The notes under the pieces are model-generated. The model was not told the origin of the DNA and did not search any database. It saw only the letters and a list, made by a program, of their open reading frames with translations. 64,000 nt of DNA, taken from the IMG/VR virus record IMGVR_UViG_3300015262_000001, positions 62,001 to 126,000 of that record. One strand, 5' to 3'. Positions within the stretch are counted from its first letter, which is position 1; each line of letters starts with the position of its first letter. Positions 15,966-62,466 of this stretch are shown here, piece after piece. The position numbers and the translations under genes were made by a program.

Positions 15966-17498
15966 TTAAGCTCCGAGCAGGCGTTTCACGAGTTCGTTGA
16001 CTACCGCTACGGTCAGGCGCTCACGCTTGTCCATGACGTTGTCTTCTTTGCTCGTGTCCACGAAGGTGGCTTCAATGACGTCAGCCGTCAGAGTGGCACC
16101 ACAGGCACGCAGGAAGGCAGGGATCAGGGTGGTTTCCAGCAAGGTATCCAGACGAGGATCACCACCGTCATCAGGACCCACGCCGACTTCGATCACGTCG
16201 CCGCCGTTGAAACGTTCGGCCAGGATGTAATGCGCTTTCTCCAGCTCATTAGCGAACTTCGCCTGAACCCAGCTAATCAGCATCTGATTAGCACCGCGGG
16301 CAATGTTCGTGCGTTCCAACAGCTGAGGGCTCTCGCTGATGAAATCGAAGATCGCCTTGATGCCGCCCTTGATGAACAGATCACGCGACTGTACCGACAA
16401 CTTCTCGTGGATGTGATCGTAGTAAGCTTTGGCGTGAGCCTTGCCACGACCTACATCGTTGATGAAGTCAGTCACGGTCATCGTGTTACCGGTCAGGTTC
16501 GCCCAGTGGTAACCCATGATCGCTTCGGTGAAACCCGCTTGGGCCGATTGGATCTTGTCCAGCATGCTGTTAGTGTAGAACACCTTCAGCTTGGCTTGCA
16601 TGAAACGGGTATCACCGTACTGCGACTGGCTGTGTGGAGTCAGCGAAGCAGACTTCTCAGCTACGATCACCAGTTGACGCTGGCGGTAAACCGCTACCAC
16701 CGACTTCAGCTTGATGAGGTACAGGGTCATGCCGTTCCACAGCAGGCTGACGAAGCTGCGGTAGGTCGACAACTCACCCGTTACCAGCCAAGGCGCAGGA
16801 TCTTCGCTGAAGTACATCTTGGTCAACAGGACATACATCTTCAGCAGCAGAACGAAACGCACCGACTTGATCTGCGAGAAGTCGAAGATGCCGTCTTTGC
16901 TGACGAACAGGTTTTCCAGTTCACCGAAATCACCGATACGGCTGCAAGCGTCACCAATACTTTCGTCATCGTCTTCGAGGATGGCGATCAGGTCACCGTG
17001 AGTAGCCCCGATGAAATCGAGAACTTCCTTCTGATCAGGCCAGCGCCATTTCAGTTGGTTGAGGAGCTTCAGGTCAACACCGGTGTAGGTGATTGACTTG
17101 TCACGTACTTCGGTCGGATACAACGCCGATTCGAAGAAGCCGTTGTCCACGTTGATGTATTGCACGTCGATCAACTGTTCGGTCAGGCTTTGCAGTTGTT
17201 TACGCGAATACAGCAACTGAGTGTCTTTCAACACACGACGAGCCATCGGCACACCGTAGGTACGAATGTTACCCAGGGAGTCACGGATGATCTCGGCCAG
17301 ACGATCAGAGGCACCTTCGACGGCCTCGGTGTGCATGTTGCCTTGGCTGGCTTCCATGATCTCCTGACGGAAGTTGTCAGTAAAGGCCAGAGCGCCACCG
17401 GATTCACCATTGAGGCCGGCGATCACAGGACCAGGACGGAAGGTACCGCCGCCTACGGCGATCAGTTCGCCAAGTGCAATACTGGATTCGCGAATCAT
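15966..17498 (-). CDS. Conserved protein, phiKZ gp177-like, 510 aa
   Basis: Long biased ORF; synteny. Confidence 0.7.
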   Translation of the reverse strand: MIRESSIALGELIAVGGGTFRPGPVIAGLNGESGGALAFTDNFRQEIMEASQGNMHTEAVEGASDRLAEIIRDSLGNIRTYGVPMARRVLKDTQLLYSRKQLQSLTEQLIDVQYINVDNGFFESALYPTEVRDKSITYTGVDLKLLNQLKWRWPDQKEVLDFIGATHGDLIAILEDDDESIGDACSRIGDFGELENLFVSKDGIFDFSQIKSVRFVLLLKMYVLLTKMYFSEDPAPWLVTGELSTYRSFVSLLWNGMTLYLIKLKSVVAVYRQRQLVIVAEKSASLTPHSQSQYGDTRFMQAKLKVFYTNSMLDKIQSAQAGFTEAIMGYHWANLTGNTMTVTDFINDVGRGKAHAKAYYDHIHEKLSVQSRDLFIKGGIKAIFDFISESPQLLERTNIARGANQMLISWVQAKFANELEKAHYILAERFNGGDVIEVGVGPDDGGDPRLDTLLETTLIPAFLRACGATLTADVIEATFVDTSKEDNVMDKRERLTVAVVNELVKRLLGA

Positions 17499-17671
17499 TT
17501 CGACGCTCCTTGTACACAGGCAACGATGGCCTTGCTGATCTTTTCATCCATTACGGATTCACCCAGCGGGGCAAGGAATTGCAACCCTACTTTGGCGAGG
17601 GTCCGCTTAACGACCTCCACGGTATTGGCGACCGTGACGATGTTGGTGATGAGTTGCTCTTTATCAGTCAT
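17495..17671 (-). CDS. Small protein, 58 aa (MTDKEQLITNIVTVANTVEVVKRTLAKVGLQFLAPLGESVMDEKISKAIVACVQGASK), below the ORF-track cutoff
   Basis: AGGAG RBS, ATG at 17671, stop overlaps the next start (ATGA); fills the 195-nt gap. Confidence 0.8.
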   Translation of the reverse strand: MTDKEQLITNIVTVANTVEVVKRTLAKVGLQFLAPLGESVMDEKISKAIVACVQGASK

Positions 17672-17692: not shown

Positions 17693-18619
17693 TTAGAGTG
17701 GTGAAGGGCTGGAGACGCGGTTCTTGACCGACATCCCTTGGTAATACATGTCGTAGAGACGAGCACAGATCTCGCCCACGGTGATGTCACCATCCTTGTC
17801 AATGTCGAACCCGCTGTTTTGCAGATAAGACTTGGCTTCGATAGGGACAGGAGAATCTTTGCGGAACAGGACTTCGTCCGGACCTTTACCCACCGCAGCA
17901 GGATAGAAGATCGTCAGATAGAAATCCTCGAGACGTTTGTAGACCTTGCCTCGCTTCTGCCACATCTCGAAATACTTGAACACCAGATCAAGTTGATCCA
18001 GTTGGCTCATGGCCTTGACGTCGTCCAGGGTGATATTCAACCCGTACGTCTTGGACAAGTCGGTCACTGCCGCAGTACCGAACTGAATCAGACCGAAGTA
18101 GTTGCTACCGCCGTTGTTCTGTTTATCAGGACGGAAGGTACCGCCTGATTCAAAGCACATGCAGGCCATCAATGCAGAGGCTGCACCCGAGAACATGTTT
18201 TGTTTGCTGCACCAGTCGCGAACCTTCATGCTGAAAGCCGCTGGAACTCGCGTACTCCAACCGAGGTCGTAGAACGGAAGATTGTTGCGCTTGGAATAGC
18301 TGAACAACACCTGGCGCAAACCACCCAGGCTACCGTTACCTGGAATGCCATCCACTGCGCGGGCATAAAGACCAACCAGTTTCAAGTTGCTCTGGATATC
18401 TTTAACCGCTTGTACTGCAACATCGTAGCCAGCTCCTGAGGCAACAGGCAGGGGCACAGAGCGCCCCCCGTTGAGGAACAGGTGGTAGTCCTGAAACATC
18501 TTCAGGACCCCATCCCGACTTCCATTACCCCAGACACCGTCAATAGCGCCGGAGTAGACCTGACCCTCACCGAGGACCACCTGAATGTCTTTAACTCCGT
18601 TGACTGTCTGGAAGATCAT
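17693..18619 (-). CDS. Modular endolysin: two N-terminal peptidoglycan-binding-like repeats plus lysozyme/transglycosylase-like catalytic domain, 308 aa
   Basis: Repeats VKDIQ..Y.GAIDGVWGNGS / VKDIQ..LYARAVDGIPGNGS; catalytic CMCFESGG and GLIQF motifs; EF-hand-like loop near the C-terminus. Confidence 0.82.
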   Translation of the reverse strand: MIFQTVNGVKDIQVVLGEGQVYSGAIDGVWGNGSRDGVLKMFQDYHLFLNGGRSVPLPVASGAGYDVAVQAVKDIQSNLKLVGLYARAVDGIPGNGSLGGLRQVLFSYSKRNNLPFYDLGWSTRVPAAFSMKVRDWCSKQNMFSGAASALMACMCFESGGTFRPDKQNNGGSNYFGLIQFGTAAVTDLSKTYGLNITLDDVKAMSQLDQLDLVFKYFEMWQKRGKVYKRLEDFYLTIFYPAAVGKGPDEVLFRKDSPVPIEAKSYLQNSGFDIDKDGDITVGEICARLYDMYYQGMSVKNRVSSPSPL

Positions 18620-18621
18620 CT

Positions 18622-21600
18622 TTACTTACCCCTGTAAATGGCAATAGCCTGTTTGGTAACCCCAACCGACAATTCACTTGTGCCCAGTCGATCCCTAAAG
18701 CTCAGTACCATGCGGTTAAAACCGCCTTTAAAACTACACTTGACGTCTACCACACGACCGTCTTGAGTCATCAACGGCTTCTTCATCACACCGTTGACGG
18801 TACCTTTCATCTGGTTGGCAATTACGTATTTGTCCGAGGTGGTAGAACCATCCATGGATTCGACGTAGACGGTAAACAATATCTTCCCTGGTGACAATAC
18901 AGGCTTACTCACGTTGAGGTTGTTACTCACGCTACCTGTTGCAACACTGCCATCAATCGAAGACATACGCTTGCGTTCTTTGTCCGAGGTAGCGACCAGT
19001 TTACGCACACTGTCCGACATCTTTTCCACAGGTGAGTTGTACATCACGTCGATCTTAACGACCTGGCCGTGGTACTTGGAGCGAATCTGTTTGATCCCCA
19101 GACGGTTGATATCCCCGACTTGAGTATTCGTATCTCCAGCCCCTGCCAGGTGGCTCTCTTCAATTTCGCATAAAATCGCGTCGTAGTCGATTTGGTCACC
19201 TTGTTTAACCTTAAAGGTCACAACCTTATCCACGTCTACAGCGAAGGTGTTCTTCGTCAGAAACGGGGTAATCGATTCCTCCATGATCTCTTTCGAAACC
19301 GCGATGGAGTCCTCGTAGGTATCCTGGTCTTCTACCAACGCAATGCGAACTTGCTTGCCGTTAAGCCAAACCACTTGTCCTGGGCAGAACGGGTCACGAG
19401 CAAACCACTGCTTGTCCCAGCCCAGTACTTCACCCTTGGTAAACTTGTCGCCGACTTTCATATCGGTAACACGGGTGTGACGATGGTATTCACCACTGGC
19501 TTCACCAATAACCAAACCCAACGGATACTTTTCAGCAGTACCGTCGTTATAGGTGATTTCCAGATAGTCCTCTTCGACTGCCGTTACCTTGCCATCCTCT
19601 TTAGCCACCTTGCTGTAGAGTTCGGAAGTCCGTTGAGCAATGACGTTGTCATAACCTGTACGGGTGATCGGCATGGTGTAGTTTTCAGCACTGACCGCTT
19701 GAGACGCCTGAGTCGAGGTAAACATCCCACGCTTGGTATCATCCTTGTTCATACCAAATGCCAGATTACCTGTTACCGAATACAGCGAGGTAGCAGATGG
19801 CTTACTCTTGGTGTCAATGTTGCCGCGGTAGTCGAGGATCTGAGGGTCAGAGGTGGTGTAGGTTACGAAACCCACTTTACCACTGTCCTTGTTAGCCTCG
19901 GAGATCTTGCCACGATAGCTCTTAAGCTGAACGCGAGCCCGTTTAACCACTGTGATCTCGCTACGTCCACCAGTACCACCAAAGGTCAACTCTTCCTGAT
20001 CCTTCAACTGGTGGATAGGGTTCACTTCCTCCACTCGGTTAACCGAGGTATCCTTGAGGATGCTCATGATCACAGCTTCAGGGTTGATCTCAAGCTTCTG
20101 CTTACGACCCTTGCCTTTGTTGAAGTACTGACGTGCAGCCCCTACCATGATCTTGTAGTAATGACCAGCGAAACGCTCGTAGCCTACGAAACGCTGCTCT
20201 TCCAATTCCACCTCGTGAGGGGTGTAGTCAGTTTCCAGCAGCTTGGCTGCGTCAATCAGCAGGTAATGAAAGGACTCACTGTAACCCATGCGTTTCAACT
20301 GATCTTTGGTGATCGCGTCAATAAACATTTTGTACAGCAGGTTCATCTCCAGGAACTGCGAAGGACGAACCTTTGGATCCCCCATCAGTGGACCCCAGAT
20401 ACCTTTGTTGTTCAGGTCACTCCGACTGAAGTTACTGATGTTGTTCAACTTAGGCATACCACCAAAGATCAGGGTGGTCAGTTTCTCACGACGGTTGAAG
20501 ATCAGATACTCGTCGTTGAACTGGATGGCGTACTCGTCGTCAGCCAACTTAGGACGCGTCCCCATCGGCACACTGCGGGTCGTTGCCTTAATGATCTTCA
20601 GCAGGTCATCAATCCCGAAGTAGTAACACAGGACTACACCCAACGGGAACTGAAAGCCGCTGATGTTGATCACGGCATGTTCATTGGGCGCTTTGCTGAA
20701 GTTGATCCCCATCAACCCTTCAAAGGTGTTAAACTCAACACCATCCAGGTAGAGGTTGCCGTAGCTGTCGATCGTGATTGGTTTCTTGTTCTTGACGCCT
20801 ACCAGGAACATGTCCGGTTTGGTAAACTTCTTGAACTCAGGATGTTCTTCCAACAACTTCTCGATGCGGAAGTCCAGCAGGTATCCACCCACGTTGATCC
20901 ACTGGAAGCGACTGGCCAGGATGGTGTAGATCCGCGGACCGGTATAGTCACGGTTACGACCATTACCACGACTCAACGTGATATCCTTGTCAGCCATAGC
21001 GCGCAGCAGGATCTGTTTCTTCAGCCACACCCCCAGGTCATCCACCACCTTCTTGCTACGGGTCACCATCAACTGGCGGTCATAGTGAGAGGTCAGCAGC
21101 ACAGTGCTTGCATCGATCTTGCGGATCGGCAGTTCCATGCGTTGCAGTTGCAGGTGAGACTTAACCCCGTCAACAGTAAAGGAGCCGTCTTTATTCACCT
21201 TAGGGAAACGAACCTGGTGAGTCGACTGCTCCCCATCAACGTGATGGACTTGCATTGTCATGACGTCGTAGGAACCCTCTACACCATGAATCTCTTCATG
21301 CTTGTAGTCGTTCAACGCAAAACCTGCGTTCTGGATACCCACCGCCATGCGAGCGATGTCCTTATACAGGAACTTGTCCACATAACCCTGCTTCAAGACT
21401 TTGGCACGGCTCTGGAGCATCGATTGATCGAGAATCGTGGGGAAGTTACCTTCGATCTTTGCGTCGCTGAGAAGTGACTTCAGCTCCTCTGGTTTGATCT
21501 CCATGTATTCAGCCAGACTCTGACCGTTTTCCATTTCAATGTGATAAACCTGAGTAGCCTTGCGCATGAAGAACTGCTGTTCTGCAACAGACAGACTGCC

Positions 21601-22992
21601 TTCACGAGCCTTCTCTTCCAGTGCTGCGGATACCCCACTTTCAAACGAGGTGAACGGGTCCTTCTTGATGGAGACTTCGCCAACCACTTTATCCTGTTCG
21701 AGCAGACGATCATCTACATGTGAGGTCCAGTCTTCAGTGCTTTCAGGATTTGTTCCGTCTCCCTCTTGTCCGGTCCCTTCATCACTTCCGTCGTCAGCTC
21801 CTTGACTACCACCGAAAGCATCACGGAGAGGATCAGGATGACCAGTAGTTCGCCCACCGTCATTTTTGCGAGGAAGCGTTCCTTCTCCGGATCCACCGGA
21901 TGTTTTACCTTTCCCTTTCTCAGCTCGCGACGCCTCTGCATCCAGGCGCCCAGCCGTCTCTGCTTCTTCTCCTCTTCCATCTTCCTTTTCCTCTTTTACC
22001 ACTTCCTCTTCCGAGACACCACCCCGGGTAAGGTTAAGCAAGGCCAGGTAAACACGTTTAGACGCATTCAAACGTTTACTGTGTTTCTCACGCTCGCTCT
22101 TTGGCGAGTCTCCATCCTTGGGCTTTGCTTTCGGATCCATTTCTGCATCCAACCACCCTTTCAGTGTACCGAGGTGAATTACCAGCGCACGACTGTTAAA
22201 CACAAAGATCAGGTGGAAATCTTCGATCGCTTTATCAGAAAGCTTATTTAGCAGACTGTATTCGTAGTCACCGAACAGGAAAGCCATCCAGTCCATCAAC
22301 CAGTAGGAACTTTCCTGCTTGGTGGTCCGTACAGTTTTGTTGCTGGCCAGTGGCTTACCGTCACGGAAGCTTTCAACGTAATGATCGTAGTCGACCATCA
22401 GTTCGGTAAACGACGGCATGTGCAGCGGCAGGTCAATGCGGTGGAACTGCTTGCGGCGTTTACCACGTTCAGCTTCTTCGTTAACACCGTCCATCAACAG
22501 ATTGAAGTGGTTGTAGAACCGCTCGAAGTTGATGAACAGAGAAGCCCGTGGATGCCAGAGCATATCGGCAAGACCGTAGCTCTTAACAATCAGAACCTTG
22601 TCCTTGTTGTAGACCGTGTTGATATCCTTGGTCCAGTTGTACTTGTAGTGCGAACCGCGATAACCCAGGATAACTTTACGAGGTTCGATCTGTACAGCAC
22701 GACCGCTACCAATCACCGGGGTGTACTTGGCCGGAAACTCGATAAACACTTCATCAGGGTAGTTGCTGATAAAGGCTTCGGAAATCGACGGGCCGATCTC
22801 TTGTGGGTTGTTTGGGAAGAAGTGAACCAACGAAGAACGTGGCAAGATGATCTCGCCAATCCCGATAAAGACAGGGGCGATCAACTCTTGACGCTTACGC
22901 TGTACAAAGGCGCGGTAGAACTGAGGATAGAGTGCTTCATCCCCCGTCACAGCGTCTAGGGGACTCAGCGTGTTCGCCGATGGGATATTCAT
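18622..22992 (-). CDS. Virion RNA polymerase beta subunit, large part (phiKZ gp178-like), 1456 aa; start refined to MNIPSAN
   Basis: RpoB motifs (DQEELTFGGTGGRS, SEANKDSGKVG, TYEDSI, DKYVIANQMKG); ATG 4 nt after the beta-prime stop. Confidence 0.9.
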   Translation of the reverse strand: MNIPSANTLSPLDAVTGDEALYPQFYRAFVQRKRQELIAPVFIGIGEIILPRSSLVHFFPNNPQEIGPSISEAFISNYPDEVFIEFPAKYTPVIGSGRAVQIEPRKVILGYRGSHYKYNWTKDINTVYNKDKVLIVKSYGLADMLWHPRASLFINFERFYNHFNLLMDGVNEEAERGKRRKQFHRIDLPLHMPSFTELMVDYDHYVESFRDGKPLASNKTVRTTKQESSYWLMDWMAFLFGDYEYSLLNKLSDKAIEDFHLIFVFNSRALVIHLGTLKGWLDAEMDPKAKPKDGDSPKSEREKHSKRLNASKRVYLALLNLTRGGVSEEEVVKEEKEDGRGEEAETAGRLDAEASRAEKGKGKTSGGSGEGTLPRKNDGGRTTGHPDPLRDAFGGSQGADDGSDEGTGQEGDGTNPESTEDWTSHVDDRLLEQDKVVGEVSIKKDPFTSFESGVSAALEEKAREGSLSVAEQQFFMRKATQVYHIEMENGQSLAEYMEIKPEELKSLLSDAKIEGNFPTILDQSMLQSRAKVLKQGYVDKFLYKDIARMAVGIQNAGFALNDYKHEEIHGVEGSYDVMTMQVHHVDGEQSTHQVRFPKVNKDGSFTVDGVKSHLQLQRMELPIRKIDASTVLLTSHYDRQLMVTRSKKVVDDLGVWLKKQILLRAMADKDITLSRGNGRNRDYTGPRIYTILASRFQWINVGGYLLDFRIEKLLEEHPEFKKFTKPDMFLVGVKNKKPITIDSYGNLYLDGVEFNTFEGLMGINFSKAPNEHAVINISGFQFPLGVVLCYYFGIDDLLKIIKATTRSVPMGTRPKLADDEYAIQFNDEYLIFNRREKLTTLIFGGMPKLNNISNFSRSDLNNKGIWGPLMGDPKVRPSQFLEMNLLYKMFIDAITKDQLKRMGYSESFHYLLIDAAKLLETDYTPHEVELEEQRFVGYERFAGHYYKIMVGAARQYFNKGKGRKQKLEINPEAVIMSILKDTSVNRVEEVNPIHQLKDQEELTFGGTGGRSEITVVKRARVQLKSYRGKISEANKDSGKVGFVTYTTSDPQILDYRGNIDTKSKPSATSLYSVTGNLAFGMNKDDTKRGMFTSTQASQAVSAENYTMPITRTGYDNVIAQRTSELYSKVAKEDGKVTAVEEDYLEITYNDGTAEKYPLGLVIGEASGEYHRHTRVTDMKVGDKFTKGEVLGWDKQWFARDPFCPGQVVWLNGKQVRIALVEDQDTYEDSIAVSKEIMEESITPFLTKNTFAVDVDKVVTFKVKQGDQIDYDAILCEIEESHLAGAGDTNTQVGDINRLGIKQIRSKYHGQVVKIDVMYNSPVEKMSDSVRKLVATSDKERKRMSSIDGSVATGSVSNNLNVSKPVLSPGKILFTVYVESMDGSTTSDKYVIANQMKGTVNGVMKKPLMTQDGRVVDVKCSFKGGFNRMVLSFRDRLGTSELSVGVTKQAIAIYRGK
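21714..21980 (-). CDS. Candidate overprinted membrane protein (88 aa) in the +1 frame inside virion RNAP beta
   Basis: ATG with purine-rich GAGGA/AGGAAG upstream; basic N-terminus; one 18-20 aa hydrophobic helix. Expression unproven. Confidence 0.4.
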   Translation of the reverse strand: MEEEKKQRRLGAWMQRRRELRKGKVKHPVDPEKERFLAKMTVGELLVILILSVMLSVVVKELTTEVMKGPDKRETEQILKALKTGPHM

Positions 22993-22996
22993 ACCT

Positions 22997-24613
22997 TTAT
23001 TTCTCCATACCGCTGGTGGCGGCTTTGAGCATAAACAAAATGGGTTCGTTAACAGGGTCGTAAAGGAACCGATTGCTACCGCTGATGTAATACTCGCGCT
23101 TACCAAACAGATCGTTAACCTGAGCCTTGCTGTCTTCAGCACACACACTGTTACTGTTGAGCATGTCACCATCGTGGTCGGAGTCGAGACCGGCTTCACG
23201 ACTTGGGTCTACTGACATGGCATCAAAGTAGTCTGGCTTTTCAATGTTGTGCGGATAGCGCATGCATTCTTCAAGCACTTCCCACTCAGTATCACGGATG
23301 ACCCGAGGCTTGGCGCCTTCAATGCTCAGGAGGTTAACCTTGGCAGGGAAGATAGAACCAATACCAATTACCGGGTAACGTGTCTGTTGGGAGACCTGGT
23401 CACCAATCGTCTTGTGGCAAGAGAGGTAGTAGAGCTGCATGTAGGTGATTGGAGTCACCAGTTTACGATCCTTACCCGCTGGCAGGTCGTTGATGTCACT
23501 CAGGACACAAACATCATGACCGTCGTCGTACACCAGCGCCAGATAGTGCCCAGAAAGGATGATGGGTTTGGAGCGGAGTCGAGCATTTCCGAAACCGTTG
23601 AAGAGTTTGGAGATGCCTGTGGCAGTTGACCACTTTTCGACAACGGCTGCTGAGACCTCAACATATTCATACTCCAGTGTCTTGGTATTGACTAACTTGA
23701 CGTTTTGGGATCCTGGGCTAAAGATGGTACCCAGGTACTTGGTGAGCAGTGCGTGAATGCAAACGTACTGAAAGTTCAGCAGCGCTTGATAGAGGCCCAT
23801 GTCCACCGAGTTGGGGTTGACCCCATTCCCTTTGTGCAAGTGCTCCCTGGAGACCTTACGAGCGGTAATAACGTTACGGGTACCCGATACCACGCCACGA
23901 GTAGAAACCCGCCGCTGGAACAGACCCGACTTACCGTCCATCAGATCAAAGATGTATTGGTCGATATCGTTGTAGGAACTCTGAAGACCCCAGCGCACTG
24001 TGTCATACAGTGGGTTATCACCATCTTCCTTACTACCCAGCGACACCACACGAGTGCGGAACAAAAGCTTGCGATAAAAGTCGGTGATCTCTGGTTCAAC
24101 AGTAGTGCCGTCCGGCTGGAACTCGATGTCCCGTAGCCCGGCAGGTGGAACCAGGACCTTGGCAGCCAATGCAATCGGCTTGAACCGTTGGACCAGCTCA
24201 ACCTTTTGTTTACGCTTGTAGCTCTCGGACAGAGTCGGCTGCAATTCTTTGAAGTGACTGATAAAGAAACTGAAACCAGTCTCCCCGTCGAGGAGGTTGG
24301 ATTTTATGAAATCTTTGGCCTGTGGGTCCCAGACGGCGTATTCCGTGCCTTTGAGAATTCCGAGGTAAAGCGACTTTGTTTGAATCATCGCTTTAAAGTA
24401 AGTTGGGTTGAATATTTCTAATTTGGTGTCAATGTACGCTTCGGTTTCGTCGCGCTCTTTGCTACCCAACTTGCCGAAGATTTCAGGAGAATAAAGACCT
24501 TCCTCATTGAGGTTTTGGGTCATGCCTTCAAATGCGTCAGTGGACGTCACCGGCATAAATACAGGCGGTGTGATTTTGTTAAAGTCCAGTAACGTAAGGT
24601 TTGTGGGTTTCAT
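22997..24613 (-). CDS. Virion RNA polymerase beta-prime subunit, N-terminal part with catalytic loop (phiKZ gp180-like), 538 aa
   Basis: RpoC motifs (GLYSPEIFG, GKSGLFQRR...GTRNVIT, RYP) and metal-binding DxDGD (DSDHDGD); no intron break visible. Confidence 0.9.
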   Translation of the reverse strand: MKPTNLTLLDFNKITPPVFMPVTSTDAFEGMTQNLNEEGLYSPEIFGKLGSKERDETEAYIDTKLEIFNPTYFKAMIQTKSLYLGILKGTEYAVWDPQAKDFIKSNLLDGETGFSFFISHFKELQPTLSESYKRKQKVELVQRFKPIALAAKVLVPPAGLRDIEFQPDGTTVEPEITDFYRKLLFRTRVVSLGSKEDGDNPLYDTVRWGLQSSYNDIDQYIFDLMDGKSGLFQRRVSTRGVVSGTRNVITARKVSREHLHKGNGVNPNSVDMGLYQALLNFQYVCIHALLTKYLGTIFSPGSQNVKLVNTKTLEYEYVEVSAAVVEKWSTATGISKLFNGFGNARLRSKPIILSGHYLALVYDDGHDVCVLSDINDLPAGKDRKLVTPITYMQLYYLSCHKTIGDQVSQQTRYPVIGIGSIFPAKVNLLSIEGAKPRVIRDTEWEVLEECMRYPHNIEKPDYFDAMSVDPSREAGLDSDHDGDMLNSNSVCAEDSKAQVNDLFGKREYYISGSNRFLYDPVNEPILFMLKAATSGMEK

Positions 24614-24640: not shown

Positions 24641-27600
24641 ATGGCCGATGATTTCGATTCATGGGACGATGATCCCTTTGGTGGCGATCTAGACTTTGAC
24701 GACGATTTCGATAAACCCAAAGCAGGTTTTATCAGAAGCTTTGCTACTGGCTTCCTTTCGGGTGTCGTCGGCAAGACCGTAGGTGACACCGATGCCAGGG
24801 TTAACACCCTCAAAATGGTTTTGCCCAATACTTGGCTCGGGACGTTCAGTAACGTCGCCCTGCTAAACCAGCGCCGTAAGGAGGTAATGGAGGAGATTAA
24901 AGGGGATAGTTACCAGACGGTACAGGATCTCCAGTATCTCGCACAACGGGCCGGGACCAAACTGGGTAAAGGGGGTCCTAATAAAATCTCCGATCAACTG
25001 ATGAAATTCAGTTCCCATGATTTCTCGGACTGGGAAAAGGTCGATTATAGCGGTGACGGCGACAGTCCTCCCCGTATGGGTGAGACCACTGACGACGAAG
25101 TCAAAATGGTCATGGAGGCAAGTGAAGCCAATTCCTTGCTAGAACGTTCGACCATGGAAACCATTGCAGACCGTACGATGAGTATGATGTCTGAGGTGGG
25201 TGGTCGTACCATTGGTAGCATGAATGGCATGAACCGTGCGCTGGTGCGTAATAACCAGCTCATGGAACAGTTGGTTGACTTCCAGCGCCGAGTGCAGGCA
25301 CGTAACGATGCCATGCAACTCAACGTCATGACGCGGATGTACCTGACGAACGCCAAGTACTACAAGTTCCAGGAAGTAGCGCAGCACCGCGTTATCGCTG
25401 AATTGAAAAGCATCCGCGAATTCTCGAAGATGTCTGACTATGAGAAGACCTCTCACGGCCAGGCCATTCGTAAAGAAATCCGCTCGCAGTTCTTCAGCAC
25501 GGTCAAGAGCAAGTTCGGTGGCATCTCTGAGTTCATCAACGACAAGTTCGGTAAGGATGCACGGACTGGCACGATCGGTGCCGTAGGTGACGTTGTAGGC
25601 TCTGTACGCATGGCTGCTGAGATGACTGAGGGCATGACCCTCAATCTCGGTGACATCGCTGGTAACGCCGCGGCTGGCTTGTTCATCAGTCAACTGCCTC
25701 GCATCATGAAGTCTGGTAAGGCACGTGAGTACCTGGCCAAGTTCAAGAAGAACTATCCGAAACAAGCGAAGTGGGCAGAAGACGCCTATAAGCGAATGGA
25801 GGATCTGGGTAACGTAGCGACTTACACCACTGGTAACGCAGCAGGTTTGGTTAACGCCATGCAGCGCCACTATGTAGGTGGCATGGACGTTAATGCTCAC
25901 GAGAACTACGACGAGTACCTGGCTTCGTTACCGCCTGGTGCCAAGCCTACTCCTAAGCTGGAATGGGAAGTCCTCAACACCCTGAAGAAAACTGCTAACA
26001 AAGGGTTGGGTGCGTTGTATGAGAACACCTGGTCGAGCAGTGGTAGTCGTTACTCCCTGACTAACCGTACGTTGGCTGATAGCTACGAGCAGTCACAGTG
26101 GACCCGTCGCAGTGACCGTACCCTGAACGAAATCATTCCTCAGTGGCTGAGCCAGATCCACCTGTCGTTGGAAAAACAACGTACCGGTGATGATCGCATG
26201 AAGCCAATGTCGTATGACTACGTGAAGGCTCGTTTCATTTCGCATGAACAAAAGGTTAATAACGTTGTTAACAAGGTTATCGACCGTAACAGCTTCAGTT
26301 CGGTGGCTACGTCCTCCAACAACATCACAGACACGATTGACCAACTGGGTTTAGGTGCACTCAGCCCTGAGGCCAAGAAAGCGCTGTCGATGGAACTGAT
26401 CATGGGTAGCGATAAGGAAGAGGCGTTTACGCCTTGGAACTTCCTGAAGCTGGATGAGCACTCCGGGGTATCCCCAAAGGTTGCTAAAGAAATCCGTCGT
26501 GCCATGAAAGCTGCGTTCGACATCACTGACGATCACATCAGCGCCTTTGAAGGAGGTAGCGATGCGGACCGTATCAAGATGGCTGGTTACCTGCCAACTG
26601 AAAAGGCTCGTAAGAATGTTGTCGGTGTGGCCGATGCTGTTAAAAGCCTTGGCAACCTGGTTCCGGATATTGCTGCACAGTTGGACATTCATAAAGGCAC
26701 CGGTAGTTACGATGCCTTGAAAGAATCGGGGTTGGTCACCACGGACGAGTATAACCGTGATGACATCAACATGGACATGATCAAGCAGGCCATTGCCTCC
26801 TACATTGAGGACCCTAGTCGTCGCAATCCGACCATTCCTGATCGTGCCCCTCTCCCGACGCGCCCGGGGAGCTTTGGTGGTTTCCCCTACACTGTACCGA
26901 CCTTCGGCAACAGAACGCCTGTAATCCCCGGAGAGGACTCCCCAGAGGGTCTTAAAGTCCAAGGAATGGACAAGCTGACTGAATCACTGGGAAGTATCGG
27001 TGATTTGAAGACAGCCATCAACAACATGGGCGGTCCTAGCAACCCTCTGGCTCAGATGTTGAACCTGGATCCGTTGAACGCCGGCATGACCACTCTGAAC
27101 GAGCAGGTTAAGCGTCTGGTGGAAATGGGCGGTGAACGTAATGACCTCCTTACACGCATCCTCAACGGTCAACCGGGTGGTGGCAAGCCGCCAACTTCAG
27201 AAGACCAGCATGACGTCACTGCTGGTAAGCGGTCGATCATCGACCGTCTGAAAGCAACCAACCTGAAGGACATGTTCAACAAGGGTGTGGACAAGCTGCT
27301 GGATGCTCAACCTCTGGTATTGGGTGGTCTCCTGGGTGGCCTTGCTGCTTATGCGTTCCATGACCCTAAAGCAGCTGCATTGCTGGGTGGTGGTGCTGCG
27401 GTGGCATTGGCTTACGGCAGGTTTCACAGCATGTCCAAGGCCCGTGAGGCTCTGGATAGTGAAGACCTTTACGAAGAAGGTTCCGACGTTCCGATCCTGG
27501 AAGCTAACAAGCTGGCCAACCGCAACTACTACGATGCGACGAAAGGATTCCTCATTACGTCCTGGAAGCAAATCACCGGTAGTGTCAAGGACATGACCAA

Positions 27601-30600
27601 CGACACCATCATTGGTGCGCGTCGATTGGCGGCTAAACTCTTTACCAAAGAGAACAAGGAAGTATTGCTCAGCGGGTTGAACAAGATACGGGACTTTGCG
27701 GTCAAGGCATTCAAGTGGATGGATCCATTTGGTCGTGCAGTGGCTCTAAAGGACAGAATCGTTAATCGTTTCCACCAGATGGACGTTTACAAGGAGGGTG
27801 AATCCTCCCCGGTGTTGGTCGGCAAGCGTTTTGCCACCGGTGAATACTGGAAACGTGGTGAGGGTGGCGAAGCGGTTCAGCTGACGGGTTGGCATGAGAT
27901 CGATGGAGCGGTCTATGACAAGAACGGTGAGGTCATCATTACCCAAGAGGAATACGACCGCGGTCTGAAAACCTCGATGGGTCTGAGCATCAACAAGTTG
28001 GGTGCTGCCGGTAAGAAGTTCGGCGCGCTGACCATGGATCTGTTCAACAAAGCACGGGAAAAGGCGGGACCTGCGTTCGGTAAGGCCAAGGACGCCACCA
28101 TGAAGGCCCTCAAGGCCGACTACAGCCCGATCGTCAACGCAGTCGATCGTATCTACCACTTGCTGCTGAAGCACTGGGGCTACGCGCTGGAGATGCCTTT
28201 GGCACCCTCTACTGGTCCGACTAGCGATGAAGAGATTAGCGTCCCTGTAACGGATGTTAAACCTCCAAAGCTGAAGGTCAAGCTCAAAGCAACTGCCTAT
28301 GACAAGAAACCGGTAGGACCGGTCGATCGTCTGGAGATTCCAAAAGCTGCACAACAGCCAGAAGTACACCCTGAGGAGTTGGCACGTCGGGAGACGGAAG
28401 ATACCAAACCTAAAGGTGGTCTCTACAGAAATGTTGAGGAAGAGATCAAGCGGCGTACTCGCGAGCAGTTGGGTGAACAGCCTACCGAGGACAACCGTCT
28501 TAACTCCCGTGCTGACAAGATTCAAAAGGCTAAGGAGAAGAAAGACGAAGACGCCAAAGATGCCATGATCAAGTTGAGCCAGGGCTTTGGGTTCTTCGGT
28601 GGAAAGGGAGACAAGGAGAAGAAGGAAAGCACGGGTATCTTTGGTCTGTTGAAAGACGGTCTGGGTGCAATTGCCGGTGGTATCTTCGGTCTTACCAAGT
28701 TCTTCACTGGTTCGTGGTGGAACAGCTTCAAGACGCTGGGTAATTTTGCCAGCATTGGTATCAAGACATTGCCCGCCATCGCCACAGGGATTGGAGCGCT
28801 TGCGAAGGGAATCTTTACGCTTCTGCGCACAGGCAGTATTACAAATGCCGGTGCTGATACCTTTGACCATCTGCGAGGAAAGAAACGCACGAAAGCTCAG
28901 CGAGACGCTGCCCGTGCTCGCCGTCGTACTCCTGGTGGTCGTGTTGGTAAAGGTAGTTGGAAACTGGGCGCTGGCATGGCGATGAACTTTGGCGTAGATG
29001 CACTGGTAAACTCGGGGATGATCGACGAGGGTGGTGCGCTCGAGAAGCTTGGTGATATCGCTTCTACTGCTACTACTGTAGTGGGTGGGTATCAGATGGC
29101 TGCTGGTGTCGCTTCGGCTGTCGGCGTTGACATCGGTGTAGGTGCCATGGCCGGTGCAGCGGGTACTGCGTTGTCGGCAGGTTGGGGTCTCGCGGCTCCG
29201 TTGCTGTTTAACCCGATAACTCTGGGTGCATTGGCGGTCGGCGCAGTCGGCTACGGCATCTACCGTTACGTTAAGCGTGGTTCAGGTAAGCAGTTCGAAC
29301 TCCGCATGACGCAATACGGTGTGTCGGATCCTGACAGTGACCTCGCTAAGAAGATCCTGCAAGTTGAGGAGAAGCTCACCAACTTCGTGGTCATCGGCAA
29401 CGGTCGCGCATCGTTCTCTAAAGAGGCTCCGCTTCAAGAGATCCTCAAGGCGTTCATCACTGACCCTAACAGCAAGCAACAACTGGGAAGTATTTTCAGC
29501 TGGTTCAACGGTCGCTTCAAGCCGGTGTTCCTGACCTACATGGCCTGTCTGGATGTGGTCAAGTTGAAGTCGTTAAAGGAATACGATGATGCTGTAAGTC
29601 AAGACGTCTACAAGGTAGCCAAGCAGGTCAACCAGACCCTCGGTTCGGTGATGCCATTTCCGTATTCGATTGTTGCCAAGATCGATCCGGACACACCGCT
29701 TCTTGGTGAGAAGGCAACTGTCGTTCGCTGCAACAACTTGCTGGATGAGCTGCGGCAGTACATCAATCGCAAAACCGATACCACCGCTGATGCCGAAGCC
29801 ATCAAGACCCCTCAAGGTGTGGAGTCGCTGAAGAAGGAACAAGCGAGTCTGCAAGCAGTTGTAAATGCACCTCGTGGTTTCTTTGAAAGCAATGACAAGT
29901 TGCAGGCTGTGATCAAAGCTCAGACTCGTTTGAGTGAGATCGACAGTCAGCTGGGGCAACTGAACAGCAGCTACAAGGTAAGTGCAGTAGCCGCGCAGGT
30001 CTTTATTAAGGACTTGCTGCCTGACAATCGCCCGGTGGATATGCTCACTGGCATTCGTTTGGCGTGCTACGGTAACGACCTGGACTTGACCTGGCGTGTG
30101 GAAGCCGTTCTGAAACTGGAACGCCACTGTGAATCCCTGATGGTTATTTCTGAAGGGGGTGCTCAGTTCAAGGGTCAAGTAGGTGACATGTTCGGTCTCT
30201 TCAAGGATTCCTTCCGCGTTGACAGTGGTGATGCAGATAACTGGTGCCGGTGGTTTAAAGACCGTTTCATGCCAGTCCTCATCAACTACTTCAACCTCAT
30301 CCAAAATTACCGTCGTGGTAATCCGGGTGTGGTGTGGAGAACCCTGTCGGTAACCGCACGCTATGAGATTGCCAAGGGGCTGGTAGAGACCAAGGCGGAA
30401 CCAGGCGCTGGGTTGATTGTACCGATTTGGAATGTCAGGGCTGCACCGTTTAAAGACGCGGTATCTCCAGGTAAACCAGACCGGGTAGACCGGATGCTGA
30501 ACGTGCTTGGTGAAGCCAGTACAACGGCTAAGCTGAAGGATCCTGAGAAGGAAGCAGGTAAAACCAACACCCAGTCCTGGGCTACAGCCATCTCCCCTCA

Positions 30601-44181: not shown

Positions 44182-44634
44182 TCACGGACGGTGAAGTGCC
44201 TTACGCACCAGCGCTTTGTTGTTTTCCCGCAAGATGGTGTTCTCGTCCAGAGTCTGTAATAGCTGTAAACGCAACCAATGGTTTTGTTCAAACAGACGAG
44301 CGTTAGTCTTGAGGAAAAGGATATTTTCTTGCTTTAAGGCCACGTTCTGACCCGCCAGCATGTCGTTGATGCGAATGAACCCTTTGATAGGCCCACCGTT
44401 ATCCCCATCGAACAAAAGGTTTACTTTAGAAATACCCACCTCCATGTCCGAGAGTTCGGTTCGCATGTTGAAGTTCGCAATCAAAAGACTGGTCGCCGTA
44501 AACATGAGTACCGTCACCAAGAAGATAGAAGTCTTCAGTGCCGATGTTAATTGCTCTTCAAGTGTTTCACCCTTTGTCAACGAGAGTACAAATTCTATAG
44601 ATCTGTTGGTTAGCTCTCTAAAGACCGCTAACAT
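44182..44634 (-). CDS. Single-pass membrane protein with coiled-coil C-terminus (phiKZ gp156-like), 150 aa
   Basis: Hydrophobic helix SIFLVTVLMFTATSLLIANF and heptad-rich tail. Confidence 0.65.
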   Translation of the reverse strand: MLAVFRELTNRSIEFVLSLTKGETLEEQLTSALKTSIFLVTVLMFTATSLLIANFNMRTELSDMEVGISKVNLLFDGDNGGPIKGFIRINDMLAGQNVALKQENILFLKTNARLFEQNHWLRLQLLQTLDENTILRENNKALVRKALHRP

Positions 44635-54300: not shown

Positions 54301-54501
54301 TCACGCTAGACCATAGGCGATCATGATCTTCTGCACCACTAGGTACCAGCTGTAAGGGAAGAAGAAAACGGAAACAAACGTGCTCCAAAACCCTTTAGCC
54401 AGTACCCAGCCGGCAACCCACATAACCAAGAACACGATGACGGCGGTTAAACCAGCCCAAGTAACGCGCGCTTTAGGTTCTATCATTTCATCATTTTCCA
54501 C
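54301..54501 (-). CDS. Small membrane protein, 66 aa
   Basis: Hydrophobic helices; WVLAKGFWSTF..VFFFPYSWYLVV pattern seen in small phage membrane proteins. Confidence 0.75.
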   Translation of the reverse strand: MENDEMIEPKARVTWAGLTAVIVFLVMWVAGWVLAKGFWSTFVSVFFFPYSWYLVVQKIMIAYGLA

Positions 54502-61400: not shown

Positions 61401-62466
61401 TGGCGGTGCTGATGCTCTCTGGATTGAAGTTGTTCCAGAGCCGCCAGTGGACTCTAACCTCTACGGTCGTAAGGGTGACAAAACCTGGCAGGTCATCACT
61501 GGTGGTTTCGCTGACGTTCCTACCGATGGTAACTTCTACCTGCGTAAAGGTGACCACAGCTGGTCCCAGTTCATTCCTCCTACGTTGGGTGACTTGGGTG
61601 GTGTTCCGACTTCGGCACTTGGGGTTAGCGTTGCAACGCTTGTTGGTGGTTTTGTTCCATCGAGCCAACTGCCAAGTTACGTCGATGATGTTCTGGAGTT
61701 CGCTAACCAGGCAGCTTTCCCAGGTACTGGTGAAACGGGCAAAATCTACATCGCCAAAGACACCAACGTTCAGTATCGCTGGTCGGGTACTGTTTACATT
61801 GCGTTGGTAGCTTCGCCTGGAACGACGGATGCTGTTGTAGAGGGGACAACTAACCTCTACTTCACACAAACTCGAGTACGGACGACTCCGTTGACCGGAC
61901 TGAGTTTGGCCACCAACAGTGCGATCGCCGCTACGGATACCGTCATCACGGCGTTCGGTAAACTCCAGGCGCAGATCACTGCGTTCGTACCTGGTTTTGC
62001 TGATGTGCCGACAGACGCCAACCTGTATCTCCGTAAGGGTGATCATACCTGGTCGGTGTACACCGGGGTTAACGCTCCGGCTAACGACGGTCACCAGTGG
62101 ATCTACAAAGGAGGCGTTTGGGTTTCGTTTGATCGTTATGATCTTGCGATTCAGGCAATTTCTGCAACAGCCACTATCGACCCAGCAGTCAACCTGTTTG
62201 CGAAGGTCGATAACTCGGCAGCCACTGCCAAAACCATCACACTGGCTGATGGGCCGAAAGTTGGCGGTGCTATCGGTGCTCGTGCGCTGACAGTAGTCGT
62301 GAAGATCAACGGTGCTGCTGGTACCATTACCTTTGCCGCTACCGGTGCAACTGTTCTGGTTTGGAACGGCGGTTCGCCTCCAGGCCTGACCGGTAGCCGT
62401 ACTGTCCTTACCTTCCTTTGGGACGGTGTGGAATGGACTGGTGCTTCTGGTGCTGTAGTACCTTAA
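58459..62466 (+). CDS. Mosaic collagen-like tail fibre, 1335 aa
   Basis: P2/Mu-prophage-type N-terminus (GGPDGADNRAPKLLANRTRYL), G-X-Y triplets, GKSAY...WL repeats, foldon-like motifs; followed by a fibre-assembly gene. Confidence 0.88.
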   Translation: MANIVEVSEFPEDIPLIDTGEPVRGGPDGADNRAPKLLANRTRYLYDQFQALVVGGLNVIGTLNNQAALDAIPTGPLVKGDAYFVEGALHVWNMVEWVNSGSLLGPRGITLLGAWPDGVALPDPTSNSVGDAYVWKSDIWLLIPQPDGWVTIGLKGDKGDSAYDVAVEDGFAGTKPQWLTSLVGKSTYQIWIDQGNVGTEADFLLSLKGAAGSVGSVKVIGTLASEAELDAIPTEGMAEGTAYFVQGALRVWNGIEWTDSGSLLGDRGITLLGTWPDTTELPSWEAATIGDAYIWRSDLWLLVPGGDGTPPPEGQPALDPAWSPIGLEGPEGDSAYDVAVQTGFVGTKPQWLATLVGKSAYQTWLDLGNVGDQQAFLDTLKSVVPGPPGDEGPARSPFEVMGAKASIGQLPATGVATEAWYVGSHLYVWVTTLAQYVDLGSVGGMSAYELAVEDGFGGTLQQWLESLKSTVEGPTGPRGQNLNVKGTVASQAFLSSIQGVVEQDAYVTDNTGHLWVYVDAAWVDIGPFQGKSVYQVWIDQGHSGDEATFLQSLQGVDGKDGVNIVVKGSVATFSALTATPAEQDVYSVRDTNTLYAYVGGGWIPLGTFKGADGVDGNPGTNGSSITIIKILTPEDQVVPDAAANAGKAYVDLNKHLQLALGGQWYDGGAVGATGDRGPQGTGINLRGTVTGTQFLPRVDQGAVDGDGYFIASSKLLYVMVDAQWEGPFDIIGPEGPPGANGEKGEAGTSINILGAYATLGELSTAHPTGNLGDGYLVGNNLAIWTTANGGEWIDIGLVRGPQGIQGVPGPSVIGPRGFKGDKGASWITLPAGDDEPGAGFTGNIGDWAVSDTFKVYYKSAVSGWTYWGQLVAGDVNSPVLSFGKAVRLGNEWIVLPVDEVPNMVDGKLYVRSLISGNTGNEGEWVELVFPDPFDDAPDDGNKYLRTRANGQPAGTWALLPSIIPEVPDDGKTYGRKNPVGSGGADALWIEVVPEPPVDSNLYGRKGDKTWQVITGGFADVPTDGNFYLRKGDHSWSQFIPPTLGDLGGVPTSALGVSVATLVGGFVPSSQLPSYVDDVLEFANQAAFPGTGETGKIYIAKDTNVQYRWSGTVYIALVASPGTTDAVVEGTTNLYFTQTRVRTTPLTGLSLATNSAIAATDTVITAFGKLQAQITAFVPGFADVPTDANLYLRKGDHTWSVYTGVNAPANDGHQWIYKGGVWVSFDRYDLAIQAISATATIDPAVNLFAKVDNSAATAKTITLADGPKVGGAIGARALTVVVKINGAAGTITFAATGATVLVWNGGSPPGLTGSRTVLTFLWDGVEWTGASGAVVP
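58627..59603 (+). repeat. Tandem intragenic duplication of an approximately 155-165 aa fibre module
   Basis: VIGTL..LDAIPT..AYFV.GAL.VWN..EW..SGSLLG.RGITLLG.WPD...GDAY.W.SD.WLL.P...GDSAYDVAV..GF.GTKPQWL..LVGKS.YQ.W.D.GNVG occurs twice. Confidence 0.9.

Follow-up and report, generated by a model that had tools for sequence, protein, structure and literature searches.

A conserved +1-frame gene for a predicted single-pass membrane protein lies inside the virion RNA polymerase gene of a large group of jumbo phages

Phage lysis genes have repeatedly arisen by overprinting in the +1 frame of an existing gene, as exemplified by lambda Rz1 embedded in Rz, phiX174 E embedded in D, and MS2 L, which overlaps the coat and replicase genes. 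Outside phages, the GndA protein of E. coli is encoded by a same-strand, out-of-frame ORF nested in a large enzyme gene, gnd, and was missed by gene callers (PMC11230408; bioRxiv 10.64898/2026.10.22.760973). Among nucleus-forming jumbo phages, phiKZ encodes its endolysin in a cassette together with its own class III (proposed IIIB) holin, gp142, which has a single transmembrane helix, a cytoplasmic N-terminal domain of about 75-80 residues and a short periplasmic tail (PMC12894885). Here, a nested ORF is examined within a 64,000-nucleotide stretch of a virus record (positions 62,001 to 126,000 of IMGVR_UViG_3300015262_000001; hereafter the window), where a sequence-only reading had proposed a hidden membrane-protein gene inside a virion RNA polymerase subunit, possibly acting as a holin or lysis regulator, or alternatively as a type IV pilin mimic that excludes superinfection.

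The host gene (18622..22992, minus strand) encodes a virion RNA polymerase beta-like subunit of 1456 aa, counted from the Met after the upstream gene, which matches phrog_3148 'RNA polymerase beta subunit' at E=0 over residues 20-1456 and is the orthologue of phiKZ gp178, EL gp186-187 and OBP gp278. Its disordered Gly/Glu/Asp/Ser/Lys-rich linker (about residues 330-430) carries the nested ORF at 21714..21980 (minus), with 88 codons, an ATG start and a TAG stop. The observation itself is correct: the translation shows the reported KKQRR and RRRELRKGKVK segments at the N-terminus, the hydrophobic helix MTVGELLVILILSVMLSVVV and a charged tail. The nested ATG begins at host nucleotide offset 1012, i.e. 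in the +1 frame, and uses the A and T of host Asp338 (GAT) plus the G of Gly339. Directly upstream is a purine-rich leader (21981..21999, minus), encoded by the host-frame Glu/Lys run, with a Shine-Dalgarno-like GAGGA at 21989..21993, 8 nt before the ATG, and AAGGAAG at 21981..21987. The TAG stop (21714..21716, minus) is formed by the host codons GTA-GAT, Val-Asp of the conserved host motif W-x-x-x-V-D-D, and most lineages use GTA, or the rare ATA, at this site.

An open frame in such a linker is by itself unremarkable. When host synonymous codons were redrawn from the gene's own usage, the +1 frame stayed open in 94% of draws (P 0.94), so that the caution in the sequence-only reading, that linkers lacking hydrophobic residues give open +1 frames and that T-ending codons give hydrophobic +1 residues, is right for the openness of the frame. 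It does not, however, explain the local excess of T-ending host codons, from which the helix is built and which make up 0.74 of codons in the helix against 0.26 gene-wide; a hydrophobic window as strong as the observed one appeared in only 0.28% of draws (P 0.003), and this probability is small in most lineages.

Comparative evidence was sought in 21 lineages spanning 31-93% host identity. The host frame and the +1 frame have no stops in 21 of 21, while the +2 frame and the three antisense frames are interrupted in 17-21 of 21, and five more phages also keep the +1 frame open. Loss of this frame or of its hydrophobic helix in relatives had been named beforehand as grounds for rejecting the gene, but both are retained in every relative of the clade. 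An ATG is kept at the aligned site in all lineages (15 of 15 independent lineages; null product 10^-6.9), a GAGG or GGAGG lies about 6-14 nt upstream of it in most lineages, and a TAG or TAA stop is found at or near the host W-x-x-x-[VI]-D motif. This argues against the very unlikely alternative that there is no independent gene, and that ribosomes translating the beta N-terminal domain shift +1 in the purine-rich stretch to make a truncated, membrane-anchored fusion protein. Although the region upstream is a slippery-looking purine run, and in a few lineages (those numbered L002, L015, L016 and L017) no +1 stop lies just before the ATG, most lineages have a +1 stop within a few codons upstream of it, and no conserved shift site was seen.

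Substitutions within the ORF, and nowhere else in the gene, follow the codon periodicity of the +1 frame. Differences between relatives run host position 1 > 2 > 3, for example 30/13/5 of 88 codons for the pair WIN-L003 (L003 being one of the window's close relatives), whereas the rest of the gene gives 117/70/411 of 1289; the only 30-codon windows of the 1490-column alignment in which position 3 differs less than position 1 are those overlapping the ORF. Host third-position divergence falls from 0.28 to 0.02-0.15 in the close six, and host synonymous divergence falls 3-5 fold. Nei-Gojobori estimates give a +1 omega (dN/dS) of 0.12-0.48 with dS 0.29-0.77 in close pairs, about the background dS of 0.47-0.80, while the host frame here gives an omega of 0.7-2.9 with dS 0.08-0.2, and the +1 frame has the lowest omega of all six frames in 8 of 8 pairs. 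The +1 product is also more conserved than the host product, for example 0.86 against 0.58 identity for WIN-L003. One short piece looks constrained in both frames: the host-frame stretch HPDPLRDAFGG (21808..21840, minus; beta residues 385-395), whose core, [SP]-[IL]-[LR]-D-[AV]-[FL], is also conserved in the host frame of distant relatives.

A profile built only from the +1 products of the window's metagenomic clade was then scored on the +1 products of named phages. It gave 73 bits for EL-like, 68 for RisingSun, 39.5 for Miami, 32 and 28 for Vibrio phages, 25 for OBP, 22 for ZPAH34, 14 for PS1, 37 for FishSpeaker, 26 for N1M2, 24 for pEt-SU, 36 for Kc263 and 33 for AH04, each exceeding 300 of 300 synonymous-codon nulls. 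In the remaining one of the 14 named phages, LAh10, the +1 frame is open with a hydrophobic stretch, but its profile score is not significant. Six-frame whole-genome searches found exactly one place per genome in EL-like, RisingSun, Miami, OBP and a Vibrio phage. By contrast, phiKZ, 201phi2-1, SPN3US-like, RSF1 and PCH45 lack the ORF.

Taken together, these data bring the alternative that there is no gene, and that the open frame and hydrophobic stretch are by-products of linker composition, codon usage, or an antisense or RNA-structure constraint, close to refutation. Composition does not predict the T-ending codon excess, the +1 periodicity, the profile scores or the kept start and stop; linkers of phiKZ-type relatives show no such ORF; and an RNA structure would not give 3-base periodicity over 88 codons. 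An antisense gene was considered because the codon-aligned antisense frame shares the wobble position and shows a lowish omega of 0.23-0.54, but it is broken by stops in 17 of 21 lineages and has a higher omega than +1 in 8 of 8 pairs. This phage has long antisense ORFs because TTA, CTA and TCA codons are rare, and a 761-aa antisense ORF at 19192..21477 (plus) was rejected as an artefact of the same kind.

The product, 75-142 aa in the lineages examined, is predicted to cross the inner membrane once, with a cytoplasmic N-terminus. Codons 1-40 (21861..21980, minus) encode a strongly basic N-terminal domain (net charge +7 here, +4 to +10 in all 21 lineages), in which W13 and R17 are invariant, a W-L-Q-x-R-R-E-L-R-K motif and an F-L-A-K/R motif are conserved, and AlphaFold2 predicts a helix at residues 2-21. 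Codons 41-60 (21801..21860, minus) encode the single predicted transmembrane helix (Kyte-Doolittle 19-residue mean 1.4-3.0 across lineages), which contains a polar residue and the invariant Ser56 within an [LF]-S motif; AlphaFold2 predicts a helix at 42-67 with pLDDT about 90. Codons 61-88 (21717..21800, minus) encode a short conserved tail, predicted to be periplasmic and amphipathic, with the motif P-x-x-R-E-x-E-x-I-L-K-x-L-K-x-G, invariant E74 and G85, and a helix predicted by AlphaFold2 at residues 70-83.

The pilin-mimic reading is not supported and can be regarded as highly improbable. In the window and most of its closest relatives the helix begins M-T-V-G-E, with Glu at +5, but this residue is Gln in L003 and in the 62-72% relatives, and is lost further out. 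The residue at -1 is Lys rather than Gly, and the leader of about 40 residues is far longer than a prepilin leader. Moreover, the gene is kept in phages of Pseudomonas, Erwinia, Klebsiella, Vibrio, Aeromonas, Shewanella, Edwardsiella and Kosakonia, hosts with very different pilus biology. A spanin is not indicated either, since the periplasmic tail is only 25-64 residues, there is no lipobox, and the transmembrane helix is central rather than N-terminal.

Searches for relatives outside the polymerase gene were largely unproductive. A word-based search of 5.8 billion proteins with the 88-aa product gave nothing. A profile search of 1.84 billion representative proteins gave six small proteins, of which the three looked up on their contigs are all the same nested ORF, called on truncated contigs where the host frame is still open, so that no stand-alone homologue was seen; the remaining hits are long repetitive proteins that match only the charged N-terminal part. 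Pfam and PHROG scans of all 12 profile members gave nothing meaningful, and no similarity to any holin family or to any known exclusion or regulator family was found. An ESM Atlas look-alike search gave only weak unnamed hits, and a Foldseek search of the AlphaFold2 model against BFVD gave nothing. A sigma-70 promoter scan around the ORF gave no hits, although this means little as these phages use their own polymerases. RNA-labelled public runs with related sequence were wastewater libraries holding only short contigs of relatives in conserved parts outside the ORF, and carry no expression information. Full-text literature searches found no description of this gene, and no database annotates it.

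The gene upstream of the beta gene (22997..24613, minus) encodes a second virion RNA polymerase subunit (538 aa, phrog_2986) and forms one co-oriented block with the beta gene. The next gene downstream (17693..18619, minus) is a modular soluble endolysin of the EL188/OBPgp279 type, with peptidoglycan-binding repeats plus a lysozyme/transglycosylase-like domain, 47% identical to the EL gp188 region (PMC3352856), and no membrane protein is encoded adjacent to it. The order beta', beta, endolysin holds in every clade member examined; however, the ORF ends 3.1 kb upstream of the endolysin start, and the co-occurrence of nested gene and adjacent endolysin is one clade-level event rather than a repeated independent association. 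After the endolysin lies a conserved 58-aa soluble protein (17495..17671, minus; phrog_17945) without a transmembrane segment, whose N1M2 orthologue is annotated as a virion structural protein; a complex prediction of this protein with the nested product returned no answer (score 0.01), which is not evidence either way. In phiKZ, which lacks the nested gene, the endolysin is kept elsewhere, and no homologue of phiKZ gp141, gp142 or gp143 was found in this genome or in EL-like, RisingSun, Miami or OBP, whereas the positive control for gp142, KTN4, scored 2e-78.

The interpretation offered in the sequence-only reading is thus supported in part: its central claim of a hidden same-strand +1 gene for a single-pass membrane protein is strongly supported by the comparative data, the lysis role remains plausible, and the pilin mimic is not supported. 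What the analysis demonstrates is that the +1 frame, and not the host frame, carries the purifying selection in this stretch, and that its start, stop and amino-acid pattern are kept across a large clade of nucleus-forming jumbo phages (EL, RisingSun, Miami, OBP, Vibrio Gorgonvirinae, Aeromonas, Shewanella, Edwardsiella, Kosakonia and related metagenomic phages). Independent initiation at the conserved ATG, using a GAGG site supplied by host-frame Glu codons, as well as translation, membrane insertion and topology, are inferred from sequence. That this is a real translated gene is very probable, and that the product spans the membrane once with its N-terminus in the cytoplasm is probable.

The function is the least certain step. 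Tentatively, the protein may work in host lysis as a holin-like protein, or as a holin timing partner, with class III topology, and would let the soluble endolysin of the next gene reach the cell wall; being made late, and at a low level, from inside a late virion gene would suit such a role. This assignment rests on topology and gene order only. The genome has other unannotated small membrane proteins that could be the holin, namely a 69-aa two-helix protein at genome 144066-144275 and a 66-aa two-helix protein at window 54301..54501, and the predicted periplasmic tail is better conserved than a simple hole-former would seem to need. Another small membrane protein lies at window 44182..44634. 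It is possible, only slightly less so than a lysis role, and all the evidence for the reality of the gene applies equally here, that the same membrane protein acts instead in superinfection exclusion, in modulating a host envelope or division factor, or in another late membrane function common to Gram-negative hosts, as the well conserved cytoplasmic W-L-x-x-R-R-E and periplasmic R-E-x-E-x-I-L-K motifs suggest specific partners. Conservation across phages of eight host genera argues for a generic target, though, and embedding in a late virion gene suits a late function better than early exclusion. An unlikely and purely speculative alternative is a role in virion morphogenesis, for example marking the inner membrane where procapsids that package the polymerase assemble, with the basic N-terminal helix binding acidic partners such as the polymerase linker itself. 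It would explain why the gene sits inside the polymerase gene, and fits the strict physical linkage to that gene in every lineage and the lack of a stand-alone copy among the 1.84 billion representative proteins, but this linkage follows automatically from overprinting, and phiKZ-type relatives assemble the same polymerase without this gene.

The finding adds a conserved, unannotated protein-coding gene to at least 13 named jumbo-phage lineages, including the models EL and OBP, whose endolysins EL188 and OBPgp279 are widely engineered although their lysis control is unknown, and provides a testable candidate for the membrane step of lysis in this clade. It is a clean, deeply conserved example of de novo gene birth by overprinting, and shows that disordered linkers of large phage proteins can hide genes that gene callers miss. 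In practice, the second gene has to be taken into account by anyone recoding or engineering the polymerase linker, or reading its apparent positive selection (host-frame dN/dS above 1). A bolder reading, which is doubtful but not excluded, is that the nested gene is the long-missing holin, or the essential holin partner, of the EL/OBP-type jumbo phages, born de novo on the polymerase linker in the ancestor of this clade. It would then be a holin encoded out of frame inside a non-lysis gene, with the lysis clock tied to translation of a virion component, for which we are not aware of a precedent.

Overprinted genes as such are already known, and the present one differs from each of the closest systems in specific ways. 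Like Rz1, E and L, it is a small +1-frame gene on the same strand as another gene and encodes a short, predicted envelope-targeted protein, but it has no sequence similarity to any of these, its host gene is an RNA polymerase subunit of a jumbo dsDNA phage that also has a true endolysin, its function is only inferred, and without a lipobox it is not Rz1-like. As in MS2 L, a strongly basic N-terminal part is followed by a hydrophobic helix with a conserved Leu-Ser-type dipeptide (Ser56 is preceded by L or F in most members), a resemblance that is only a lead. With phiKZ gp142 it shares the gross predicted architecture, including a periplasmic tail of about 28 residues, as well as an origin in nucleus-forming jumbo phages with a modular soluble endolysin. 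Nevertheless, there is no detectable homology to gp142 (hhalign probability 0.15%), the N-terminal cytoplasmic domain is about 40 residues long rather than about 75-80, no gp143-like regulator is found in the genome, and the gene is overprinted in a polymerase gene instead of standing in a cassette beside the endolysin. With GndA it shares the same-strand, out-of-frame nesting in a large enzyme gene; GndA is cellular, and the evidence here is deep evolutionary conservation rather than expression data.

The ORF is present as the sequence-only reading described it, running from 21714 to 21980 on the minus strand, with 88 codons, an ATG start and a TAG stop. It lies in the +1 frame of a 1456-aa gene (18622..22992, minus strand) which matches the PHROG family 'RNA polymerase beta subunit' end to end (E=0), and whose orthologues include the EL, RisingSun, Miami, OBP and phiKZ gp178-type virion polymerase subunits. 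The genome is a complete 228,597-bp IMG/VR jumbo-phage record with terminal repeats, and its nearest named relatives, EL and RisingSun, are only about 55% identical in this protein. The nested ATG uses the last two bases of host Asp338 and the first base of Gly339, and the purine-rich motifs GAGGA and AAGGAAG are found just upstream.

The single-sequence observation is in part more than chance. When the host protein was kept and synonymous codons were redrawn from the gene's own usage, the +1 frame stayed open in 94% of draws, since the linker has almost no xTA or xTG codons; ORF length alone therefore means nothing, as the sequence-only reading had itself cautioned. However, a hydrophobic window as strong as the observed one appeared in only 0.28% of draws, and the 19 helix codons end in T at a frequency of 0.74, against 0.26 gene-wide.

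The locus was then compared with related phages. A search for related loci returned 27 IMG/VR loci with beta proteins 53-100% identical, to which 14 named phages of the clade and 8 named phages outside it were added. In all 21 lineages first examined, only the host frame and the +1 frame are free of stops over this span, whereas the +2 frame and the three antisense frames are interrupted in 17-21 of 21. An ATG sits at the aligned site in every lineage, usually with GAGG or GGAGG about 6-14 nt upstream. The ORF ends with TAG (TAA in OBP), mostly made from host GTA or ATA followed by a GAx or AGx codon in the conserved host motif W-x-x-x-[VI]-D, and three lineages use the rare Ile codon ATA (2-4% of Ile) to make the stop.

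The pattern of substitutions points in the same direction. Among the close relatives, differences inside the ORF fall on host positions 1 > 2 > 3 (for the window paired with L003, one of the related loci, 30/13/5 of 88 codons), while the rest of the gene shows the normal 3 >> 1 > 2 pattern (117/70/411 of 1289). In +1 coordinates this is wobble > first > second, the signature of a coding frame. When the whole 1490-column alignment was scanned in 30-codon windows, the only windows with position 3 below position 1 start at columns 345-425, which corresponds to the ORF at 359-451, and the eight lowest third-position divergences are all inside it. Nei-Gojobori estimates gave an omega of 0.12-0.48 with a dS (close pairs) of 0.29-0.77 for the +1 frame in the ORF region, an omega of 0.7-2.9 with a dS of 0.08-0.2 for the host frame in the same region, and an omega of 0.07-0.14 with a dS of 0.47-0.80 for the host frame in the rest of the gene. 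The +1 dS thus matches the background, and the host frame looks 'positively selected' only because its silent sites are frozen. The +1 product is also more conserved than the host product (0.86 against 0.58 for the window and L003, and 0.50 against 0.31 for the window and a further locus, L024).

An antisense gene was considered as an alternative, as the codon-aligned antisense frame shares the wobble position. This frame is indeed second best, but of all six frames +1 has the lowest omega in 8 of 8 pairs, and the antisense frame is broken by stops in 17 of 21 lineages. Very long ORFs of 761, 161 and 192 aa (19192..21477, 21766..22251 and 22381..22959, all plus strand) do lie antisense to the polymerase gene in this codon-aligned frame, but they exist because the host gene has only 7 TTA, CTA or TCA codons in 1457; their boundaries differ between relatives, and AT-richer relatives lack them. 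They are a codon-usage artefact and not a gene, although one such ORF was even called as a 229-aa gene on a public contig (L045).

As a further test, a profile (A1) built only from the window and its IMG/VR relatives was scored against the +1 products of the named phages and against 300 synonymous-codon resamplings that keep the host protein. It gave 73 bits for the EL-like HHBS8_1, 68 for RisingSun, 39.5 for Miami, 37 for FishSpeaker, 36 for Kc263, 33 for AH04, 32 for Vibrio 2 TSL-2019, 28 for Vibrio pTD1, 26 for N1M2, 25 for OBP, 24 for pEt-SU, 22 for ZPAH34 and 14 for Aeromonas PS1, each above all 300 resamplings, whereas LAh10 (2.7 bits) was not significant. Six-frame whole-genome searches with the profile hit exactly one place per genome, always this one. 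In contrast, the corresponding linkers of phiKZ/KTN4, 201phi2-1, SEGD1 (SPN3US), RSF1, PCH45, Wellington, Simmy50 and RTH11 have no such ORF, and whole-genome profile searches of five of them found nothing. Together these results exclude composition, an antisense gene or an RNA structure as explanations, and we are highly confident that this is a genuine overlapping gene, although its translation is inferred from sequence comparison, as the only RNA-labelled public runs with related sequence were wastewater libraries carrying fragments of relatives outside the ORF. In EL-like phages (Pseudomonas phage HHBS8_1, locus L028, 4686..5144) and in FishSpeaker (locus L061, 4377..4782) the same polymerase gene is split into two CDS by an insert of about 400-470 bp, with an HNH endonuclease gene nearby, which fits a mobile intron or intein-type interruption; the gene studied here is uninterrupted.

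With regard to its origin, a profile search of 1.84 billion representative proteins returned six small proteins. Three of these were looked up on their contigs, and in all three the host frame is open through the ORF, so that they are the same nested gene, called only because the host gene was truncated. No stand-alone homologue and no Pfam, PHROG, Atlas or fold match was found, and the gene therefore looks like a de novo product of overprinting in the ancestor of one Chimalliviridae subclade. Literature searches returned no description of it, and it is not annotated in the 22 phage records inspected. The host linker is variable and rich in Gly, Glu, Asp, Ser and Lys, which is presumably why it tolerates the second frame. 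One short host-frame motif, [SP]-[IL]-[LR]-D-[AV]-[FL] (HPDPLRDAFGG here, at 21808..21840 on the minus strand; SILDVF, SLADLY and DILDVF in relatives), is nevertheless conserved across the whole clade while the surrounding linker is not. It overlaps the C-terminal half of the nested helix, so this stretch seems constrained in both frames and may be dual-coding in the strict sense; in the polymerase it might conceivably be a docking or processing site.

The family alignment and an AlphaFold2 model (mean pLDDT 72, about 90 over the helix) divide the predicted protein into three parts, namely a basic N-terminal helix (residues 2-21) with W13 and R17 invariant, a spacer ending in F-L-A-K/R followed by one transmembrane helix (42-67) with a polar residue (Glu or Gln in the nearer relatives) and an invariant Ser, and a C-terminal amphipathic helix (70-83) with the R-E-x-E-x-I-L-K-x-L-K-x-G motif. 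The N-terminal part carries a net charge of +4 to +10 in all 21 lineages, against about 0 to +4 for most tails. By the positive-inside rule the N-terminus would be cytoplasmic and the short tail periplasmic, which is an inference, albeit a likely one. In the OBP, N1M2, pEt-SU, Kc263 and AH04 group, the helix and tail are strikingly conserved (I-P-L-W ... L-W-L-x-F-T-P-A-L-R-E ... R-E-x-x-L-I-L-K-H).

The interpretation offered by the sequence-only reading is thus partly supported: a hidden membrane-protein gene holds up, a role as holin or lysis regulator remains plausible but unproven, and a type IV pilin mimic is not supported, failing both on its defining motif and on the host range of the clade. 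While the comparative data show that there is a conserved gene in the +1 frame, its expression, its membrane topology and above all its function are inferred. The next gene (17693..18619) encodes a modular soluble endolysin with peptidoglycan-binding repeats and a lysozyme-like domain, 47% identical to the EL gp188 region; EL188 and OBPgp279 are experimentally proven endolysins (PMC3352856). It has no signal sequence, and its only small neighbour is a 58-aa soluble protein without a transmembrane segment (phrog_17945; 17495..17671, minus strand), which always follows the endolysin in this clade and whose orthologue in Klebsiella phage N1M2 is annotated as a virion structural protein; a complex prediction of this protein with the nested one gave no answer. 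The order beta', beta, endolysin, small ORF holds in every phage that has the nested gene, but this linkage is one clade-level event and the ORF is 3.1 kb from the endolysin start, so that the evidence for a lysis role is circumstantial. Divergently from the polymerase block there is a 2667-aa ORF (24641..32644, plus strand), whose counterpart on contig L045 has a weak glycoside hydrolase 19 hit and which recalls the giant tail-associated lysin phiKZ gp181, found in the same position next to the polymerase genes.

The evidence is circumstantial also in that the genome has other unannotated small membrane proteins and lipoproteins that could be the holin and spanins, at 54301..54501 and 44182..44634 (both minus strand) and, in coordinates of the whole genome (C1), at 144066-144275, 142515-142685 and 167817-167993 (all minus) and 194419-195033 (plus). 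Two are 66-69-aa proteins with two hydrophobic helices, one is a 150-aa protein with one helix followed by a long helical region, one is a 56-aa tail-anchored basic protein and two are lipobox proteins. All are candidate holin, antiholin or spanin genes for a clade whose lysis system is undescribed, and none carries a lysis label in PHROGs.

In phiKZ, which lacks the nested gene, the endolysin gp144 sits elsewhere, in a cassette with spanins, a regulator and the holin gp142, a class III protein with one transmembrane helix, a cytoplasmic N-terminus and a small periplasmic tail (PMC12894885). The nested protein is predicted to have that same gross topology, although it shows no homology to gp142, has a shorter cytoplasmic domain and has no gp143-like partner. 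Phage lysis genes are the classic products of +1 overprinting (Rz1 in Rz, E in D, MS2 L), and a holin-like or lysis-timing role is therefore tentatively put forward as the single most likely function, while falling short of being more likely than not. What is new here is the gene family itself, whereas a small phage membrane protein overprinted in the +1 frame is a kind of gene already known.
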